DNA from: Podarcis bocagei
Taxonomy: Eukaryota
Length of the DNA: 64,000 nucleotides
Reading direction: 5' to 3' (one strand)
Assembly: GCA_964188305.1 (NCBI GenBank)
Contig: OZ076899.1
Below the pieces are notes generated by a model. It searched no databases, was not told the origin of the DNA, and saw nothing but the letters and a program-made list of their open reading frames with translations. The position numbers and the translations under genes were made by a program. This document shows, in pieces, positions 3,319 to 64,000 of this stretch (position 1 is its first letter; each line of letters opens with the position of its first letter).

Positions 3319-4810
3319 TGTGGTGGAAGATGCGGTGGAAGATGTTCCACTGTCAAGTTCCTTGGTTTTGTGTATTTTTATCCCCAGTATGGTGGTCATC
3401 TACACCCTGTTGACTGGATGTTTGGATACGATTGGGTGCCATTTTGAATCAAGATGGTGGATTGAACTTTTCAAAGCTCTGCTGATTGGTAACTGAATTT
3501 TGCATTCTGGTTCCTGAGATCAAGGAGCAGGTTTTCATCTGTTTTTGAATATAGTTGGATACAAATTTGAATCAAGATGGTGGACTGAACCTTTTAAAAT
3601 GGCACTGATTTTAACTATTAATTTCAAAGCTGCACTTAATTTTTTGTTTCTTAGAATTCCCAAGCAATGCTGGGCATGAGGGTAGTAATAAAATCCTAAT
3701 ATTGGGGCTTTCTTTCTTTGTTTCTCTCTTTGTTTGTTTTTGCCAAGAAGTTCTTCTAGTCAGCTGGGCCCCTGCAGCAATGATATACAAAATTATCTTA
3801 GTAATTTTGCCCTTTTCTCTCCCTTCAGATATATAGTCTCAGAATGCCAAATGTCCTTTCTTTCCTGAAGCAGCTGACGAGACTAAACGAGCACCTCCTA
3901 TGCGCCCTTTTTATCCTCTTTCTCATTATTTTATCAAACAATGCCGTGCTGGTTCTACCTCATCCGCTTTTCCAAACACAGCCAAGTCTTGGCTAAAAAC
4001 AAAACATTTTGATGGGTGCAAAACTGAAGCAAAATGTGTGGTGGTGTCTGCACAGTTTCAGAGAGCTGTTGCCCTAGAACACCACAGGTATGGCATGCGC
4101 AGAAGCAAAAGGGAACATGCCATTCACTTGCATAAAAGCTGAGGACTTCTTGTCAGAGATGTTTGTATTTTTTGCTCTGTGTTGGAACCTTCCCACATTC
4201 GTTCTGCCACCCACACCACTCCTTCTTTCACATGTGCCTATGCCACTGGAGTTGTAAACTCTACAGGCCTAAATCTAGTGTCTGCAAGATTTATGTATAT
4301 TATGTTCTTATTGATTTGTTGGTCATCTACCATAGGATGGTCTCCAGGCAACTTGCAATCTAGTTTAAAAACTTCTCAAATTCCATCAAATGTCCAGCTG
4401 AAGTGGGAAAGTGTAGATATAGATGTCAAAGTTTATACAAAAGTAGGTGTTGGTATAGGTATAAATCCAGGGTGGGGAACCAAGTCGATTCTAAGGGCCA
4501 CATTCCTTATGAGGAACTATCCAATGACCATATACCAGTGGTAGGTAGGATTAGAGCCAAAATCAAGCAGAGCAAGGAGTGTAAATTTTACTGGTGCATA
4601 GTATGCAAGTTTCTACACAAACACACACACCTACACCTCTATCAACCATCTTGGCAAGCAAGTGGCATTATCAGAGTTCAAGGACACATTTCAGCCAGGC
4701 AAATGGCTTGGGAAGAAGGGGTGTGACTAGGAAGAGTCCTGGGGGCCAGATAGAGAGGCCTAGAGAGTCGCATGCAACCAACAGGCCTGAGACCCACCTA
4801 GTATGGATTG

Positions 4811-5131
4811 TGTTATGTATTCAGTGGTCTGTGTTTGCCTGAGCTTGAGTCTGGGCTAAGGACTCTGAGCTCCTGTGTTCTGATTCGATACATGATATCC
4901 AATGACAGAACATTTCAGGATTTGGGCCTCTGCCATTGGCCCTTCAACTCTGAGTCATGATTCGCAGCTTGGAAGTTTAGACAGCCAACCGTGTTGGGAG
5001 TGGGAGTGGCCCGGGCCTTGAGAAATGTATATAAGCAGTTGCTTTGCCCCTGTTGTCCAGTTCTGTTAGTTCAATAAAGGTTCTTGCTGTTCTTGCTGTG
5101 TCTTGCCTCGTGGGAACCAACCTACACTTCT
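4811..5131 (+). mobile_element. Solo LTR (family distinct from the TGTCAGG family)
   Basis: Starts TGTTATG, TATATAA at 5028-5034, AATAAA at 5073-5078, flanked by 5-bp direct repeat GATTG (4806-4810 / 5132-5136). The 3' terminal CA is degenerate. Confidence 0.6.
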
Positions 5132-6464
5132 GATTGAATGCAGGATTTTAAGGAAGGGATTCCTTCCACTTTTCTCTGTCATTTCCCTTTAACGTTTTTC
5201 CTGCATGCCATTGATGAGCTTGAGGAAAGGCTTGTAGGTGCCCCTGCTTCAGAGCCCAGATATCCCCATGTTTGGTTTCAGGACGGAGTGCCAAGGCGTT
5301 TTGGCAGGGGGTGGGGGCCAGGAGGGAGATCTCATGCTGCATCTGTTTTGTAGGTCGAGAGAGGTCATTGCCATCTAGGGCTGTCAGTCTGGTGTCACCG
5401 AGCTGAATAACATTAAGTTGGACAAGAATGTCTCCCGTCAGTTTCCTTGCCTTTTCCAGCCTTCTGTAACTCTTTACAGCTTCTCCTTCTTTGCTGCATA
5501 AGCAGTTAGTTCAGTTTTTAAAATTATTATCGAGAGAGGGAGGGGGAATATACAGTATAAAATATATCGCAATTCCACTTTTTACACCAGAACAGTAGAT
5601 TTGCTCTATTTAACTATACCTACTTACCTGGAAGTAACCCTATTAAACTCAATGGGGCTTACTTCTGAGTAGATTTGTAGCCAACAGTAAAGTTGTCTGC
5701 AAATGCTGAGCTAGGCTTCTCTGAGAAGGCCCTGTTACGAGACTTTTAGGACTGAGCTGTGCAGCAGCTCAGACGTACTAAAAAGTTTTAGTTATTTTAC
5801 AAATCAGAGCAGTAGTGGTGGGTTGTGTGTTTTTTTAATCTTTTTTTTTAAAAAATGGATTTGCTTAAGCTGCTTTGCAGTCTCTGTTAAAGCTTGTTTG
5901 TGGAACTTTATAGATCAAGTGGGTTGCAACCTAGCTAAGTTTCACAAGTGAGAATTTTGCAAGAAGGTTTAAATACACTTGAGAGTGACTATGAATGCTT
6001 GGAGATGAAAATAATGGCATTGTTCAGCACTATCTTTCTATATGAACTCAGTGAATCCCTGCCTAGGTTCCTGGATATGCCTGGTGCGGTTCTGCTCACC
6101 CAGGAATGCTCAAAAGGCACAACTGATTTTTGAGAGCAAGGTCCATACCTCAGTGACAGAGCATGCAGAAGGTCCCAGATTCTTTTCACTTTTTTTGGAT
6201 AATAATTTTTATTAGTTTATAATATTCCAATAGTAGCCTCATTATAACAGTGCCAAATTATAATACAATTACTAATACCTATCATTCAGATGCCAGATTT
6301 TATAATTTAGGTGCCCCCCACGTGCTACAATTGATGGCTTGATGATTTACTTTATTTCCACATTCCAAAATCTTACTAATTTCAATTACACTCCAGTCAA
6401 AATAACAATCCTTTGTACAACAGCTGCAATATTAATGACTTCCATTCGTATTGACACATTAAAT

Positions 6465-19855: not shown

Positions 19856-20453
19856 AATTGATGTCCGTGTTCCCTACTGACCTCGCCAGGGAGCCAAACA
19901 CCTGCAGGAATAAGTGCAAACCAAATTGTTTTAGAACGTGAAATCCCAAACCCCAGAAGGAATCAATCATTTTATATTCTGGATCTGTGCCTCCTGACTG
20001 ATGTATCTGAATTACAGATTGGCTGGCAGCGGTGGCATGGTGGAATCCATTTAAATGAATAGCTCTCTAATTTATTAAATGGGTTATATAGGCTGGCAGT
20101 ACTGGCACTGTATCAAATTCTTGGAGAAGCAGCTGATTTCCTCTCTGCCCCTTCAAGCACCTTCCCCTTTGCTCCTTTGCATTTTTTATTTCCTCTCCTG
20201 CAAAATGTATTTGGGGAGGCAGAAGGGATGAGAAGGTAGCTCTCTTGGAAACATGTGCAGGTGCTGGATACTTTGTGAGTCCATACTTGTTCCTCAAATT
20301 AGCTCCATAGTAGTATTTTGCTTTGAGGTCCACCTGTGAAGTCTCTCTTCTTTGCCAGTTAGCTGGGGGAAGGAAAGGAATAGGGTAGAGCAAGTTATTT
20401 CTTTTCTTTGGACCAATGCATATTAGAAAGCAAGGAGCCTCTTCAGCTACAGA

Positions 20454-20601
20454 TGGGGATGAGGGAGAGATTGGGTTCAGTTTGCATTTAAAAGTGAACA
20501 TACCCAGTTCATGCATTCTGAAACAATATGCATACAGCCATCCTTTGGCCTTTGCACTTTCCCAAATTTTTCAATGCAGTTCTCCACCCAAGCCATGTGT
20601 A

Positions 20602-20645
<44 letters not shown>

Positions 20646-21285
20646 GAAGAAGAAGAAGAAGAAGAAGAGTTTGGATTTGATATCCCGCCTTTCACTCCCC
20701 TTCAGGAGTCTCAAAGCGGCTAACATTCTCCTTTCCCTTCCTCCCCCACAACAAACACTCTGTGAGGTGAGTGGGGCTGAGAGACTTCACAGAAGTGTGA
20801 CTGGCCCAAGGTCACCCAGCAGCTGCATGTGGAGGAGCGGAGACGCGAACCCGGTTTCCCAGATTACGTGACTACCGCTCTTAACCACTACACCACACTG
20901 GCTCCTATAATAATAATAATAATAATAATTTTTACCTGACCCTTCCCAGCCAGGACTGGGCTCAGGGCGGCTAACATCAAAGTATGATATATTAAAAACA
21001 TAAATTATAACTGGGTTAAAATATGCATAGAACTGCATCCCTTTAGCGAAAATAACGTAAAAGTGCATTATGTTAGGGAACATTATCTTGCAAAGTATGT
21101 ATTTTAGGCAAAATTGCATAGAAAATGTTTATATTAAGGCAAATTTGCACAAAAAATCTGTGCATTATCATCAGTTCTTAAAAAAAGAAATGCCAAACGG
21201 ATATGAAAATGTGGAAAACTAAAATTAAGATTTGTAATACCAAAAAACTGAAAGAAACCATAATTGACAGATTGACCTATTCCTA
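20454..21285. mobile_element. hAT-type MITE (TAGGGATG TIR family) interrupted by (AAT)n, a Squam3-type SINE and an L2 tail
   Basis: Ends TGGGGATG...TATTCCTA, imperfect 8-bp TSD GCTACAGA/GCTGAAGA, body homologous to 30656-31078. Confidence 0.6.
20644..20905 (-). mobile_element. CORE-SINE, Squam3 type
   Basis: Full-length, CpG-intact copy with (AAG)n tail, flanked on both sides by (AAT)n. Confidence 0.88.
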
Positions 21286-35005: not shown

Positions 35006-35194
35006 GTCCTGTGGCTGTGATCAGTGGGGAAGAAGATTCTGCCAGCCCCCTTCATCACATCAATCATGGCATCACCACACCTTCGTCGTTGGACGCTGGC
35101 CCGGACACAGTGGTGATTGGCATGACCCGTATCCCTGTCATTGAGAACCCACAATACTTCCGTCAAGGTCACAATTGCCACAAGCCAGACACAT
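35006..35194 (+). CDS. NTRK3: NTRK3 (TrkC) internal coding exon, juxtamembrane region with NPQY Shc/FRS2-binding motif (equivalent to human exon 14)
   Basis: Translates (G)[62 protein letters not shown], which I recognise as TrkC. Acceptor tgtttgtttctAG|GT (AG at 35004-35005), donor ACAT|GTAAGT at 35195. 189 bp, phase 1-1. Confidence 0.97.
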
Positions 35195-38100
35195 GTAAGT
35201 GTGCTTTCAATGTTTGCCTATGTATGATGAGGTGAAGACAGGGTGAGCAAGCCAGGGGAAAGTGAATTGAGGAGTATGAAATGAAGATGCATCAGGGGCA
35301 GAGAGGGTGGAGAGCGGGTCTTGTATGGTCCAGAAACCAGAAGTGAATCTTGTGCCCCCAAAATCACAACATACACCATCCACCTAATCACTTCCTCTAG
35401 ACATGACACCAAATTTTGAGAATCTCATCTGCCTTTGAGCATTATATAGAAGACTTCCATGAAAAGAGGAAGGTAAATAAAGGATATGGTGCCATGAGAA
35501 GCTTCCACCTTTCACTTTCTATAGGCTTCTCCATGGTTGTGGCACCAGGACTGTCCTATTAAACAGCAGACACCGCCTAGAGAGGGGGAAGAGACCATTA
35601 GTCAATACATTTCCTGTGCTATGATTGTGTATAGAGATACAAAGGCAAGAAGTGAACCACTGGCAATAGCAAAATCGGTAATGAACGCTTATATATACCT
35701 GGACAGAGGATGAGGCTTCATATTGTGCTGACAGTGCAGAGAGTCCAAAATAGCTTGAAAGAACTAGTTTCTGAAACACTATTCACAGTTGGCACAGACT
35801 CTAATCTTAAAGACTGCTGAAACAAAGAACTGGAGCAGAGTGCCTGTGATCTGCAAGTATTTGAGCAACTTGCAGGTTTCCAGTAGGGCGATGCCCATGT
35901 TTCACTATTCTGCCTAACACAGAGCTTTTTGAAAGATTGCTCCAGATGTGGCTGAACTACAACTCCTATCATCACTGATCATTGACTGTGCTGCATAACA
36001 GAACAGGAGTCCCCCACCACTTGTAGGGCCAAACGTGATCTACAGCAACCTATTTTATGTTGGCATTACTGTATGGGGCCAAGTAACATTATCCAGTTTG
36101 CAAAGCCCTTTTGTTATTAAACCAGCTGACATGTTCATAGGGACATTACCGAAACATTCTTTGCCAGTGGTTTGCTTCTTGCCCCGTGACTCTTGTGGGA
36201 TTGCTCCTTTTTTTAATCCCAGTGAACACTGAACTCCTTCCGTTAAAATCAAGAACATCACTGGGAAATAACTCATCCTTTCCAGTTTGTCGGGGGCCCT
36301 TGTAAGAGCATCTAAGGTTGGTTGAGACATATCCTCAGCTCTGTAGATTTTCCAGAATGGCTCCAAACCAAACCATATGAAAGGTCCCACCACTTCTTCC
36401 CCACCCGTGTCATACGCTTCCCATCCATGCGCTTTGGCATCGTCTATGTTTCCTGCATCTAGTCAGGACTATGGAAGAAAACAAATCTCACCCTGTACAT
36501 GGAGGTGGGGAGTCTCAGAGGTTCAGTGGGAAAGCTCCTTGCCAATGGCTTTTCAGCTGCGCCTTCACTGTTCTATAGCTTCAAAGAGTGTGGCTTGGAA
36601 AATGCATGCTTAGGATTCTACTAGGCCAGAAGATTTAAAACTTATTAATAGACTATGCATCACAACTCTGTACATGTCTGTTCAGAAGCACGACCAGTTG
36701 AATTTAATGGGATTTACTCCCAGGTAAGTTTTTATAGGGTTGCATCCTTAGTTGGTTTAACCAGCAGATCTAATTATCATTAGGACTGTTCCAAATATTT
36801 ATCATATTAGGTGTTCAAAGGTAAAAAAATAGTAATTGCATAATGGGGACACACACACATACGCAAAGACCTTAGTTTCATCTTTGTGTAATCCTCTTTC
36901 ATGCCATTGTTACCCCTCAGTGCAACTGCATTAGTATCATCTCAACACCACCACTGACACACACCCTTCACCCTTCTTCCTCTTTCTGAACTAATGGCAT
37001 GGGCCATTCCAGCCAATTAGAGATCCTGTTGTGAATGGCAGAAAACTTCACTTTACTTTGATCAGTCAGATCCGGCTGCATGACGACATCACTGATGGCA
37101 AGTGAGGGCAATTTAAACAGAAAAGCCAACGCTTTCACAGAGAGTGTCAGAAAATCACTAATAGGCAGAAACATGCTTCAGTGCTGCTTAAAATGTTTGG
37201 GGGGGGAATGGGGTGCAGTTTCAGTTTTGCCCTGATTATAATTGGGGGATCAATTTTCATCAGAGGGGCTGGAAGATAAGGCCTGAGGCTATTCTGGTTT
37301 AGGTTTGCTTCTGTAATAAGGAATGAAAAAGAAAGTCTGAATGACAGCCTTTCCTTCTAAAACAACATGTGGTAACTTTTGTGTAAATTCTGTCACCCTT
37401 CAGCATCTCAGAAAGGCACATGAATTGAGATTTTTTTCTTGTAATAATCAACTAAAAATGCTTTAATCAGCTTGATAGCCCTACCTTTGAGATTCCATGT
37501 ATTACTAGGCAATGTCAATGCCTTACTCCTGTGTGTGTCCATCAGCCAGCCCAGAATAGTTTATTGTCTCCTTTTGTAACTAAGGACGAGTTTGCACATT
37601 CAACAAAATCAAATGTTAAAGCCATCCCTGAACTTCAGACTACAGGCTTGGGTTTATGTATTCAGATGCCTTTACTGACCTTAGCTTGAGTAACACCAAG
37701 GACAATGAAGAGGAGAATTTGAAGGCATTTACATTCTAGGTACCAGGGAATGTGAACTACATATATATGCCTCCCACTCACATTGTTATAGTTGGCAGCA
37801 CTGCCAGGGCAAGCCAGAGTGGGAAGGAGCAGGGATGGGGCAGGTCATTCTTCTTCATTTTGGATTATGGTCCGAGTTGGAGAAGAAGTTTGTGGTGGCT
37901 CAGGAGATTGGTTCAGCATCTGACCTTGAATTCTGAGAAAAGCAAATTAATATCTCAAACCATCGCTACCACCAGTTCAAATCTGAGTGGCATCATTACA
38001 CATCACAACTATTCACATGCAAATGTGCCAGAGTATGACCCTCTCCATCCTTTCCCAAGGTGCCCCTGTTAAGTTTACCAAAGAGCTCCTTTCTAGAGAG

Positions 38101-60093: not shown

Positions 60094-61439
60094 AACAACA
60101 GTTCCCATCAGCCTCTTCGAGAATGGCCAGTAGCTAGGGATGGTGGGAGATGTAGAACAAAGCATCTCAAGAGCTCCCCATTGGCTGTTCCTGAAATAGT
60201 GGGTCTGTTGACCAGGGAAGGACAGAAATTTATCTTCAGGTATATTTATATGAGACCTATCCAGAGACTGCATTGTTTGCCAATCATATTATTAATTGAT
60301 TGAATGAATGAATGAATTAGCTGCCCTTCACTAGCAGGTCCCAAGGTAGGTTACAGCAATTTATAATTTAAAAATTCAGAATAAATCAGACTACAACCAC
60401 ACGTCTCAGGTGTCAAAGGCCAGGGTAAAAGGCGCACCTTCAGCATTTGCCAAAAGCTGTACACTCCATGTTATTTCCACAAATATATGCATTTCATGCA
60501 CACTTTGCCCTAGTATATGCATTTTTGTACACATTATTAGCATTGCAGAATTCAGATAAGTGCACATTTTGAAGGACGTCTATGTTTTGGTCCACATACT
60601 GTTTTGGAAAATGCAAATCAGGGAAGTTTGCCTTGAAATGTGAACTAAATCAACCCCCCCCCCCAACTCCCCATTCCCAAACTAATCTTCATGGATCAAC
60701 TGGAAGGGGACTATGAGAGTGTGGAGTTTGTGAGAGTGTGGAGTACCCACACCCACCACTGACATGTGGACCCCAGGGGGCTTGATGAAAAGTGATTGTT
60801 AATGCCCTCCCCTTGTAAAAATTCCCATAATGTCTGAACATAGCTGTTCTTTGGCTGTCTTCCTCTGTATTATTTGATATCCATTCCATCCTGGCTTTTG
60901 CAAACGTCTTGGCTAGACATGAAATTCTCTTGTATTCTCCCTGGACATTTATGCTGGGTGGCCCATATGTGTGGGTAAAGGAGTTCTCCCCTTCCGTGAC
61001 CTCCTGCACACCCCTGGCTTGGGTCTAGTGAAAAGCGTGATGGATTGGCCTGACATCCTTGGCAAAGTTTCTTGGCCCTGTGATGGGAGGTCTCGGCACA
61101 CTGTGGGAAGATATACTCCTTTTGCTCCCGCAGAAGAACATGTCAGGGTCGCAATGACTGACAGGAAGCTGCCAACTTAGCACTGCTGCAGTTCAGCTTA
61201 TTTTGGGTCTTGATTAAGCCTCCCTCCTAGAAATGATTCTTCATCTCCCCACCTCCCCTCTTGCTCTAGTAAATGCTCCCCCTCCCTCACTTTTGTTCTG
61301 GGTCTTTACACAGGGCAGTGGTTGGGGGAGTGATGGAAATATTTAGGATCTATGTCCTTTCCAATCTATCAGACCGCAGCATTTAGCACTTTGGAATCAT
61401 TCCATTCCGTTAAAGTATGCCAGAAAAAACAGACGTGTG

Positions 61440-63277
61440 GAGGGACTTCCGGGTTGGCGCGATCGGGAAATGGCGGATTCCCTCCGAGCTCCGGAGGGAA
61501 TCGGCTCAGCGGTGGATGGGTCTTTGCCGTGCCGGCGACACGGGGACCCTTAAAAACCGCAGGTGCGGAAGCCTGCGGACTGAAGACTCGGCGGGTGCCT
61601 TAAGCGCCCCCCCTGATTCGCAATGAGCCTTTTTAAAGGCTACGGAGGGGATACAGGGGACGGCGTGGCACTGAGAGTCGACCGCTACCGCTGCTGAGCG
61701 AAGCCGCGAGCCATAACCGGAGAGCGCTGACTTCCTTCCTTGAAATTCGGACTGAAAAAAGAACCCGTGAGTAATTTGGAACTGAACTTTAAAACTTTTA
61801 CCTTTTGAATTTGAGACGACCGGGGGGTGTGCTAAAAGGAAGTCCCCACACCCCCCCTTGCAGACGATCCAGAGCAAAGAAATAAGAACTAAGCTGGAGT
61901 GCCTACCCTGTAAAGGGTGAGTCTTAAAAAGTCAGTAACTTCCAAGATTTAGAAAGGTAAATTTGAGCAGGAGAGTGGAGTGTTGGAAGAGTCTTTGTTT
62001 TGTGGTAAACAACCCTCCCTCCCGGGCCCGGGAGCGACCTGATTTGGAGTCTGTATAGAGGAGCAGAATTTGACAGCTGTCAAAAGCTGTCAAATGGACT
62101 ATTAATAGTGAAAAAAAATTGCTGTTTAAGACCTCTCCGGATTAAAAGGAGTTACAATTGAACTAAAATTTTGAGAAACAAAGAAACAATAATAGGACAG
62201 AGGATTGTTGGAGAAAAGGTTACTCAGTAACCAGATTCCCTCTAGGGGGAATTCTGTGGAATTACAATGGCTGTGGGTGGAAAGATACTGAGAGAAATCG
62301 AAAGAATGTTCTCACTGGTGGGAACCCTACAGGAGCAGACTACAGCTATGAGTAAACAATTGACGACCTTGGATTTGGAAACAAGTAGTTCTGCTGAAAG
62401 TAATGAGGGCCTGAGTGAGAAAGAACCCACAGCTGAATTTGAAACAATAAACAAAGAAGAGGAGAAGACAAAACAAGAAAGAGAACAAGTTATCTGGGAA
62501 AGTACTAACCAGAAGCCGGCATCTGGAGAACACAAGCAAGGAGACTATTGGATTAAATCCACTTTAAGCCTACGAAAGATACAGAAGATGAAAGTGGAGG
62601 CCCTGGGACTTTATGGAATTCAGGAGCTCGAAATAAAGAAGTACAATTGGGGCCTCCACATAGACTTTGATTTTGACTATCAGCAAGACTTAGGCCTTGT
62701 GGAAATTCCTCAGCAGTTGCCTTTAAATATGGGAAGAGACTATGGACTGATTGGATTGATTGTTAAGGAAATCTTTCGAGACTCGATGATAGACAAAAAG
62801 GACTACCAACAAAACCGGCGGAGAGGGACTAAAAGAGAATTGAGAGCCTCGGATATCCGGAATCCAGGCTAAAAACTGTTAATTTGGACATGTCTTGGGA
62901 AAGGACGCAAAGCGGGGAGGGGAGGGAGGGAAGTATCAAATTTAAACAACACTCAAGACCAGGGGGTTTAGTATTAAGAAAATTATGTAAGAAAAAAATG
63001 AGAAATCGAGGGAAGAGAATTGGGGTCCAACTTAGGGAAAATTTATTTTTGTTTATTATAAAAGGACTAACATTAAGATGGAAGAAATGCCAACTTGCTG
63101 ACATAAGTTTGGGAATAGGGATGCAGGGGAGGGTGTGGGGGGAAGTCAAGGACTAGGGTTAGAAAATAAGATTTTCGGGAACTATCCATGTTTGTTGTTT
63201 TTTATGTTTGTTTTGGTGTGTTGTTTGTGTTTATATAAAATGTGAAAACCCAATAAAAATATTTAAAAAAAAAAAAA
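61440..63277 (+). mobile_element. Young non-autonomous poly(A) retroelement, L1-derived / HAL1-like
   Basis: Perfect 18-bp TSD AGAAAAAACAGACGTGTG (61422-61439 / 63278-63295), AATAAA at 63252-63257 plus A-tail, CpG-rich 5' end with AAATGGCGG (YY1-like), no RT or endonuclease coding. Confidence 0.88.
62267..62872 (+). CDS. 201-aa ORF inside the retroelement; possibly a diverged L1 ORF1p-like protein
   Basis: Uninterrupted ORF with strong Kozak context (ACAATGG), N-terminal heptad-like segment and a basic C-terminus. Similarity to ORF1p is by eye only. Confidence 0.45.
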   Translation: MAVGGKILREIERMFSLVGTLQEQTTAMSKQLTTLDLETSSSAESNEGLSEKEPTAEFETINKEEEKTKQEREQVIWESTNQKPASGEHKQGDYWIKSTLSLRKIQKMKVEALGLYGIQELEIKKYNWGLHIDFDFDYQQDLGLVEIPQQLPLNMGRDYGLIGLIVKEIFRDSMIDKKDYQQNRRRGTKRELRASDIRNPG

Positions 63278-64000
63278 AGAAAAAACAGACGTGTGATCCC
63301 AGCTAATAGAGGAATGTCTCGTATTTAACAGGGAAACAGCAGGGTTCTGATAGGTGGAGGAAAGGGCTCCTGTGGAAAGTTTAATGATTCCAACATTAAA
63401 GATCCCATGATCATAATATGGAAATCTCAGAGGGGTGGGGGTGGGGAATTGGATTGACTTCTTTTTTTATTTGCTTTTCATCCCTATTCATTAATGGCCA
63501 CCCCATAACCAAGGTCCTCAAGCAATGAAAGTGAGTGGTAAATTCATGTTTGTCAAACAGAGGCTGCATACACACTGCATTTTACTCTAGAATCAATGGA
63601 GACTGAGTACTTGTTTGTTTGTTTTTTCCTGTGTAGCCCATGCACAGTCTAGAGAAATCAGATATTTTTTGCCTCTGAAAAATGCTTCTTCAGAAACAGG
63701 TTTCATTCTGAAAATAAGAAGCTCAGTGCAGGTTCATTCTGCATTATCATGCAGTGTGTCCATTTGAAAGCAGATGTGGGTGGTCCTGGCAATGGGGTGG
63801 GATGGAGTCCATACCTGTCCAATGATGTTGTTGGTGGATTCTTATCACTTACCACTTAACAACTTACTTGTTCATTCAGCTGGGGCTTGTGCAGGGTGGA
63901 AAAGGTGTGGGTGACCTAAACAAGGGGAGGGTTTTGAAACATGTGTCGAGTAACCATGCCTACCCTTTTGGATCTCAGGATCTAGAATCAATCTAGATTG

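Follow-up and report, generated by a model that had tools for sequence, protein, structure and literature searches.

HAL1, "a non-autonomous derivative of L1 [that] encodes only ORF1p", has arisen several times independently in mammals (PMC5753468). HAL1 elements have L1-type ends, a poly(A) tail, target-site duplications (TSDs) and a single open reading frame (ORF) in the ORF1 position; they lack a reverse transcriptase (RT) and amplify as families of their own, presumably by using L1 ORF2p in trans. Protein-coding, RT-less L1 parasites of this type are mostly extinct mammalian fossils, and the contribution of their protein has never been testable in a living system. SVA and Alu, which are non-coding and of Pol III or composite origin, are also mobilized by L1 in trans and show poly(A) tails, TSDs, high copy numbers and lineage-specific bursts, and processed pseudogenes have the L1 machinery and its hallmarks in common with all of these.

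The L1 elements of lizards have been described in Anolis. Those of clade 1 (L1_AC) are ~6.4 kb long, with a CpG-containing 5' untranslated region (UTR) of 792-1,465 nt and a 3'UTR of 194-570 nt in which T-rich repeats are frequent; adenine is enriched at all codon positions, every L1 ends with AATAAA followed by poly(A), and the first ~120 bp are the most conserved part of the lizard L1 5'UTR (PMC5381506). Lizard ORF1p is ~355 amino acids (aa) long, and its RRM and CTD are highly conserved in all vertebrate L1s (PMC5381506).

Here we analyze an insertion in a 64,000-nucleotide stretch of DNA from the lizard Podarcis bocagei (contig OZ076899.1), the whole of which is called the window below. 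The insert is a complete non-autonomous poly(A) retroposon of 1,838 bp (61440-63277, + strand; direct reading), which lies in an intron of a Trk-receptor gene and carries a single ORF of 201 aa. A preliminary description, made from the sequence alone, had proposed a young HAL1-like element retaining a diverged ORF1p. We put at about 80% the probability that the insert belongs to a non-autonomous retroposon family of wall lizards (Podarcis and relatives) that has multiple copies and is transcribed at present, that this copy is full-length and very young, and that the family follows the cycle proposed below. What we observed for this element are the hallmarks of its insertion, its abundance, an empty orthologous site, strand-biased RNA, a lizard-L1-type 5' signature and the conservation of its ORF. 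A literature search, with Repbase and Dfam outside its scope, returned no such family in lacertids or other squamates.

Insertion hallmarks, family size and age

The insert is bounded by two exact copies of the 18-bp repeat AGAAAAAACAGACGTGTG (61422-61439 and 63278-63295), which are the only two exact matches in the window; none is expected, as judged from 100 shuffles. The element starts at 61440 with GAGGGACTTCCGG and ends in a poly(A) tail of 13 A (63265-63277, + strand; direct reading), preceded by the poly(A) signal AATAAA at 63252-63257 (+ strand); further AATAAA motifs occur inside the element at 62446 and 62632. The 14th A (63278) may belong to the TSD, which begins at the A-run, so that the TSD is 17-18 bp and the tail 13-14 A long. 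On the bottom strand, the nick site reads TTCT/GG or TTTC/TG. The insertion thus combines a T-rich nick site, a TSD within the 7-20 bp range and a 3' poly(A), as is characteristic of L1-type target-primed reverse transcription.

Apart from the 201-aa ORF, the element contains no sense ORF of at least 100 aa. Neither an endonuclease (EN) nor an RT is encoded, as 1.84 kb leaves no space, and holds no ORF, for either; the element is therefore not an autonomous L1. ARAGORN found no tRNA in the element and Rfam gave no match to it at E<=1, and on these grounds we rejected a SINE (tRNA-, 7SL- or 5S-derived, with a Pol III-type head). Searches of the window with blastn and tblastn revealed neither another copy nor an older remnant of the family, and the 64 kb contain no L1. 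The perfect A-rich TSD, the poly(A) signal and tail, and the lack of EN and RT listed in the preliminary description were thus all recovered, which supports its view that the insert is a young poly(A) retroposon of full length that lacks an RT and was integrated through target-primed reverse transcription of the L1 type.

The size of the family was estimated from the k-mer depth of contigs in public sequencing runs. Run X2 comes from the window's species (2 mismatches to the window in 740 flank bases) and has a flank depth of 26-33, whereas single contigs with 0-4 differences to the element reach depths of 4,372-5,487, corresponding roughly to 130-210 near-identical copies that share those exact segments. 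When all contigs with a likeness of at least 88% are summed per bin, the depth in this run amounts to 6,000-190,000. Although these figures are rough, they rule out a single-copy origin. Parts of the element are present in 20 runs, which represent ten studies and eight coded organisms, and Logan contigs encoding 201-aa relatives are 991-1,814 bp long, i.e. of about unit length. An unrelated repeat sharing short segments with the element could also raise the depth, but such an origin is opposed by the unit-length contigs and by a contig of 1,449 nt (see below). Among the best-supported sites, to which the table of family differences was restricted, ~12 (~0.6%) show a different base in the family contigs than in this copy; all but one of them, itself partly supported, lie outside the ORF.

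The age of this insertion was assessed in a related species (species A, run X1), whose flanks are ~3.5% diverged from the window. A 1,610-nt contig of this run joins window position 61436 directly to 63293 with zero letters between them. This is an exact empty site with a single copy of the 18-mer, and the insertion is therefore younger than the split of the two lineages, in agreement with the young age originally proposed.

In species A, the element body was represented by one 1,449-nt contig, which is 99.2% identical to the element and has a depth of 3.7 (single-copy flanks: 24). In further runs of this sample, 0.25 and 0.00 of the element words were present. This contig is probably bleed-through from a species B library rather than a genomic copy.

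Transcription was examined in run X23, which consists of raw single-cell RNA reads from the window's species. In this single RNA run, 2,215 reads fell on the element, as compared with zero on the intron sequence directly flanking it. Strand ratios reached 112:3.5 across the element body, a bias strong enough to exclude DNA carry-over and, if 3'-end droplet chemistry is assumed, one that corresponds to sense transcripts. Coverage was concentrated in the few hundred bases upstream of the element's poly(A) site, as such chemistry predicts. Among the 2,215 reads, 290 were at least 99% like this copy.

The 5' module, leader and 3'UTR

The first part of the element (61440-61840, + strand) is a CpG-rich module, presumed to be an internal promoter, which is common to more abundant repeat families. 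Over the first 400 nt, the GC content is 52-63% and the ratio of observed to expected CpG is 1.0-1.1, as compared with 0.22 for the whole window; a ratio of about 1 indicates that these CpGs have not yet decayed. The element carries, at its bases 5-36, an L1-type 5'-terminal signature, GACTTCCGG-N17-ATGGCG (61444-61475, + strand), which occurs only here in the window and is not expected by chance (0 occurrences). The signature includes a YY1-like core, ATGGCG, at 61470-61475 (CCGCCATTT on the opposite strand), which we take to be a near, not a full, match to the YY1 consensus. In Anolis, L1s of clade 1 have the corresponding 5'-terminal consensus GACTTCCGGTG-N8-ATGGCG (PMC5381506). Because this terminal signature is one published for lizard L1s, it supports, at the level of sequence, a probable L1 ancestry of the 5' end and putative mobilization by L1 in trans.

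The depth profile sets the 5' module apart from the rest of the element. In coded species B, the k-mer depth of the first ~370 nt exceeds that of the body several-fold. Summed over the module, the depth climbs to 190,000 in species B and, in species A, to 120,000, which is several-fold to more than 1,000-fold above the element body; in species A, the module attains this depth with the body of this subfamily all but missing. Such a profile is consistent with a promoter module shared between families.

The leader (5'UTR; 61440-62266, + strand) is 827 nt long and contains several hairpins, among them a perfect 10-bp G/C stem formed by 61822-61831 and 61847-61856 (direct reading). It has few upstream ATGs: 4 as compared with 9.5 ± 2.4 in dinucleotide shuffles, with as few in 31 of 2,000 shuffles. 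A donor-like site, AGGGTGAGT, is located at 61914-61922. Several elements of the preliminary description hold here, namely the CpG-rich region beginning with GAGGGACTTCCGG, the leader of ~830 bp and the donor-like site near 61915; of its YY1-like motif, the core is present but the full consensus is not matched.

Three near-perfect palindromes were noticed in the leader (61473-61505, 62016-62037 and 62068-62095), e.g. GATTCCCTCCG-AGCT-CGGAGGGAATC; the one at 61473-61505 sits in the segment of highest copy number (summed depth up to 190,000). Furthermore, many family contigs of species B and C depart from this copy exactly over the block 61806-61869, which is bounded by loose contig ends before 61806 and behind 61869. 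This block holds the 10-bp hairpin and ends just past TTGCAG (61858-61863), with a GTGAGT at 61767 upstream, and looks like a swappable or optional leader segment. Splicing of the leader from GTGAGT (61767) to TTGCAG (61858-61863) was considered and is not claimed, as no RNA joint is listed there.

The 3'UTR (62873-63264, + strand) is 392 nt long with 9% C. Two G-quadruplex-type motifs lie in it (62914-62930 and 63111-63142, + strand), whereas the whole window has no more than three such motifs on this strand. It also has a T/G-rich tract (63190-63234, + strand), in keeping with the G-rich and T-rich 3'UTR initially described. Its length, GC content and T-rich repeats are inside the published range of lizard L1 3'UTRs (PMC5381506). 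More generally, the UTR lengths, the GC content and the A-richness of the element, seen at all three codon positions, are within lizard L1 ranges. The element therefore shares with Anolis L1 clade 1 the GACTTCCGG...ATGGCG signature, a long CpG-containing 5'UTR, an A-rich sense strand, a 3'UTR with T-rich repeats, and AATAAA with poly(A), but differs in lacking ORF2 and the ORF1p domains. G-rich tracts in the 3'UTR have been reported in Anolis for L1AC_17 and L1AC_20 only.

The 201-aa protein and its relation to ORF1p

The single ORF (62267-62872, + strand; 201 aa plus stop) encodes a family-specific orphan protein. When the element was shuffled 1,000 times with its dinucleotides preserved, no shuffle contained an ORF of this length (largest 149); in the real sequence, the two alternative frames across this stretch contain 16 and 14 stops. 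A word-based search yielded seven distinct 201-aa variants, 83-85% identical to the ORF and forming one cluster. A profile search with HMMER, run exhaustively against 1.84 billion representatives, returned 9 proteins only, all of 129-215 aa, one of which is a gene model of Podarcis lilfordi; a second word-based search with the family alignment as query added one fragment only. A second subfamily, ending in ...DVRNPG with the stop TGA, is present in both DNA and RNA of the window's species and resembles this copy up to the stop codon but no further (loose ends at 62853).

Along the protein, a long N-terminal helix is followed by an acidic linker, a middle part that varies and a C-terminus that is basic and conserved. 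In the alignment of 11 members, the N-terminus (MA..GK...EIERMF.LVG.LQEQ) and the last ~25 residues (KDYQQNRRRGTERDLRASDVRNPG, followed by the stop) are conserved, with A194, S195, P200 and G201 invariant, whereas the middle is variable, with indels of up to ~25 residues that are all in frame. Relatives at 25-85% identity share the start and the PG-stop end. The expectation that the ORF should be conserved among copies is thus borne out both within this cluster and in its distant relatives. Frames remain open across 176-215 codons in subfamilies only 25-46% identical, which appears hard to explain, from sequence comparison, without selection on the protein.

All members down to 25% identity end in ...A-S-(D/G)-x-x-x-P-G directly before the stop. 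The 2A consensus is D(V/I)ExNPG, and the C-terminal NPG was considered as a 2A-like skipping motif; this candidate was rejected because the spacing is off, the N varies (N/D/S) and a stop replaces the proline.

Structure prediction with AlphaFold2 gave a mean pLDDT of 35 with a shallow alignment and 47.9 with a wider one. Self-association of the ORF1p kind was probed by predicting a complex of three copies of residues 1-80, for which the score was 0.21 and the mark 0.32.

The preliminary description had read the protein as a diverged ORF1p, in which the segment LGLVEIPQQLPLNMGRDY would recall the RRM/CTD junction. Neither proposal was borne out. Pfam Transposase_22 was absent from the results for this ORF even at E<=10, and from those for the 11 members at E<=1; the Pfam families DDE_Tnp_ISAZ013 (E=0.043) and YabA were rejected as chance-level. 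There was no ORF1p among the matches of the exhaustive HMMER search, sequence and profile searches of the PDB were blank or at chance level and showed neither RRM nor CTD, the ESM Atlas gave no usable match for the ORF or for the family relative P0016, and the AlphaFold2 models contained no RRM or CTD. This absence is meaningful, because both domains are highly conserved in all vertebrate L1s (PMC5381506).

The best surviving alternative is nevertheless a HAL1 in the strict sense, a lizard half-L1 whose ORF would be a truncated or strongly diverged L1 ORF1p. The L1-type 5' terminus speaks for it, as do the position of the ORF, which follows a long leader as ORF1 does, and the confident N-terminal helix and basic C-terminus, which are reminiscent of the coiled coil of ORF1p and of its basic regions. 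A fragment comprising the coiled coil alone would also be invisible to Pfam Transposase_22, and one possibility is that the ORF1 N-terminus and coiled coil were fused to downstream L1 sequence by an internal deletion. We nonetheless regard a true HAL1 as unlikely, since RRM and CTD went undetected in 11 members by every approach listed above and the ORF, at 201 aa, is shorter than lizard ORF1p (~355 aa; PMC5381506).

In comparison with HAL1, then, the element likewise has no ORF2 and forms a family of the same structure with poly(A) and TSDs (depth 130-210 times that of the flanks); its 5' signature matches the Anolis clade 1 consensus at a different spacing, which would fit ends derived from L1. 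It differs in its protein: that of HAL1 is a recognizable ORF1p (coiled coil, RRM and CTD; Transposase_22), and that of the lizard element has no detectable Transposase_22, RRM or CTD. The two also differ in age, as HAL1 is mostly ancient, and the lizard family produces RNA and made this insertion after its host lineage had separated from that of a close relative. The term HAL1-like therefore fits the architecture (RT-less, with one ORF, poly(A) and TSD), and membership in HAL1 is not established by the ORF1p test. From SVA and Alu, the element differs by its L1-type, Pol II-style 5' end and its conserved ORF.

It is tempting to go further and regard the 201-aa protein as unrelated to ORF1p, i.e. 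as a new retroposon-encoded RNA-binding or escort protein for competition for ORF2p, but we advance this only tentatively. If it were so, the family would be a still-active wall-lizard L1 parasite that replaced ORF1p, with a strictly kept ...ASD-x-R-x-PG-stop C-terminus.

The ORF might, on the other hand, be non-functional, its conserved ends reflecting constraint at the RNA or DNA level, such as the context of the translation start or recognition of the 3' end, or the sampling of intact copies by gene callers. The protein databases contain called ORFs only, so that broken copies are not seen; conservation is poor in the middle part, where the confidence of the prediction is also low, and the recognition scores of the protein in the ESM Atlas are low. 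We consider this improbable in view of the 176-215 open codons at 25-46% identity with all indels in frame, the end of conservation at the stop codon in the second subfamily, an ORF length beyond that of all shuffles with stop-rich alternative frames, and the depletion of upstream ATGs in the leader.

Finally, the lone copy in the window, with its CpG-island-like 5' end, ORF, poly(A) and TSD, does look like a retrocopy, but an origin as a processed pseudogene from a host mRNA, or as a single L1 with an internal deletion, is extremely improbable given the hundreds of near-identical copies and diverged subfamilies in several species, the L1-type signature at element bases 5-36, and the lack of any host or other homologue, and hence of a parent gene, among 1.84 billion representatives; processed pseudogenes, unlike this element, are not self-propagating families with subfamilies.

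Proposed cycle and host gene context

For the retroposon family as we favor it, we propose a cycle in which L1 would be the driver. Transcription would start at or near base 1 from the internal CpG-rich module, a putative promoter that carries the lizard-L1-type terminal signature. The RNA would terminate at the element's own AATAAA and be polyadenylated. Because the element has neither EN nor RT, ORF2p would be needed in trans, and resident L1 ORF2p would copy the poly(A) RNA into a nicked T-rich target, leaving the A-tail and the 18-bp duplication. The 201-aa protein would be translated after scanning of the ATG-depleted leader and would probably coat or mark its own RNA through an oligomerizing helix and a basic tail, forming a ribonucleoprotein. 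In this way it may substitute functionally for ORF1p in the competition for ORF2p.

Several points weigh against this reading. L1 nicks at the consensus TTTT/AA, and the nick site of this insertion is T-rich yet not canonical. The spacer of the 5' signature is 17 nt here as compared with 10 nt in Anolis, i.e. 7 nt longer, and the ends were compared with the published description of Anolis L1s, any specific driver L1 of this genome being putative. Contig k-mer depth provides rough copy numbers only. The RNA reads derive from the whole family and not provably from this copy, their assignment to the sense strand depends on the assumed chemistry, and the signal is partly read-through, as indicated by reads entering unrelated flanks (loose ends at 61443, agreement 0.49). 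Selection was judged from proteins, in databases to which broken copies are invisible, and AlphaFold2 was confident for the N-terminal helix only (residues 3-44, pLDDT 73-89).

An abundant, transcribed and recently inserting lizard family would constitute a natural experiment on how non-autonomous elements capture ORF2p, on why reptile L1 lineages of small copy number tolerate parasites, and on the origin of new retroposon proteins.

The host gene was identified by a six-frame motif scan, which revealed a Trk-receptor juxtamembrane exon (...IENPQYF..., with the NPQYF docking motif) at 35006-35195 on the + strand. Its splice sites are canonical (...tttctag|GTCC and ACAT|gtaagt; direct reading), and it matches the Trk juxtamembrane peptide 2MFQ_B in the PDB with E=2.7e-8. 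Since the exon is on the + strand, so is the host gene, and the element lies in sense orientation in the following intron, as first described. The exon presumably belongs to TrkC (NTRK3), the name given in the preliminary description, rather than to TrkB. With this copy, an L1-type promoter-like module and a poly(A) signal, together with donor-like sites, come to lie in sense before the Trk kinase exons, and conjecturally could affect the usage of Trk isoforms.

Two further features of the window were noted. A 151-aa ORF at 20416-20871 (+ strand) gave a sub-threshold Pfam match to PRC2_EED_ins (E=4.7e-5; 23.9 bits, with a cutoff of 27), which may be a low-complexity match. To the right of the insertion, the segment 63475-64000 has a depth of 250-820 as compared with ~26, stretches of 78-364 nt within 63604-63980 are skipped by many contigs, and a 20-mer is repeated at 63586 and 63981; this segment is a separate, moderately repeated element with internal length variants.

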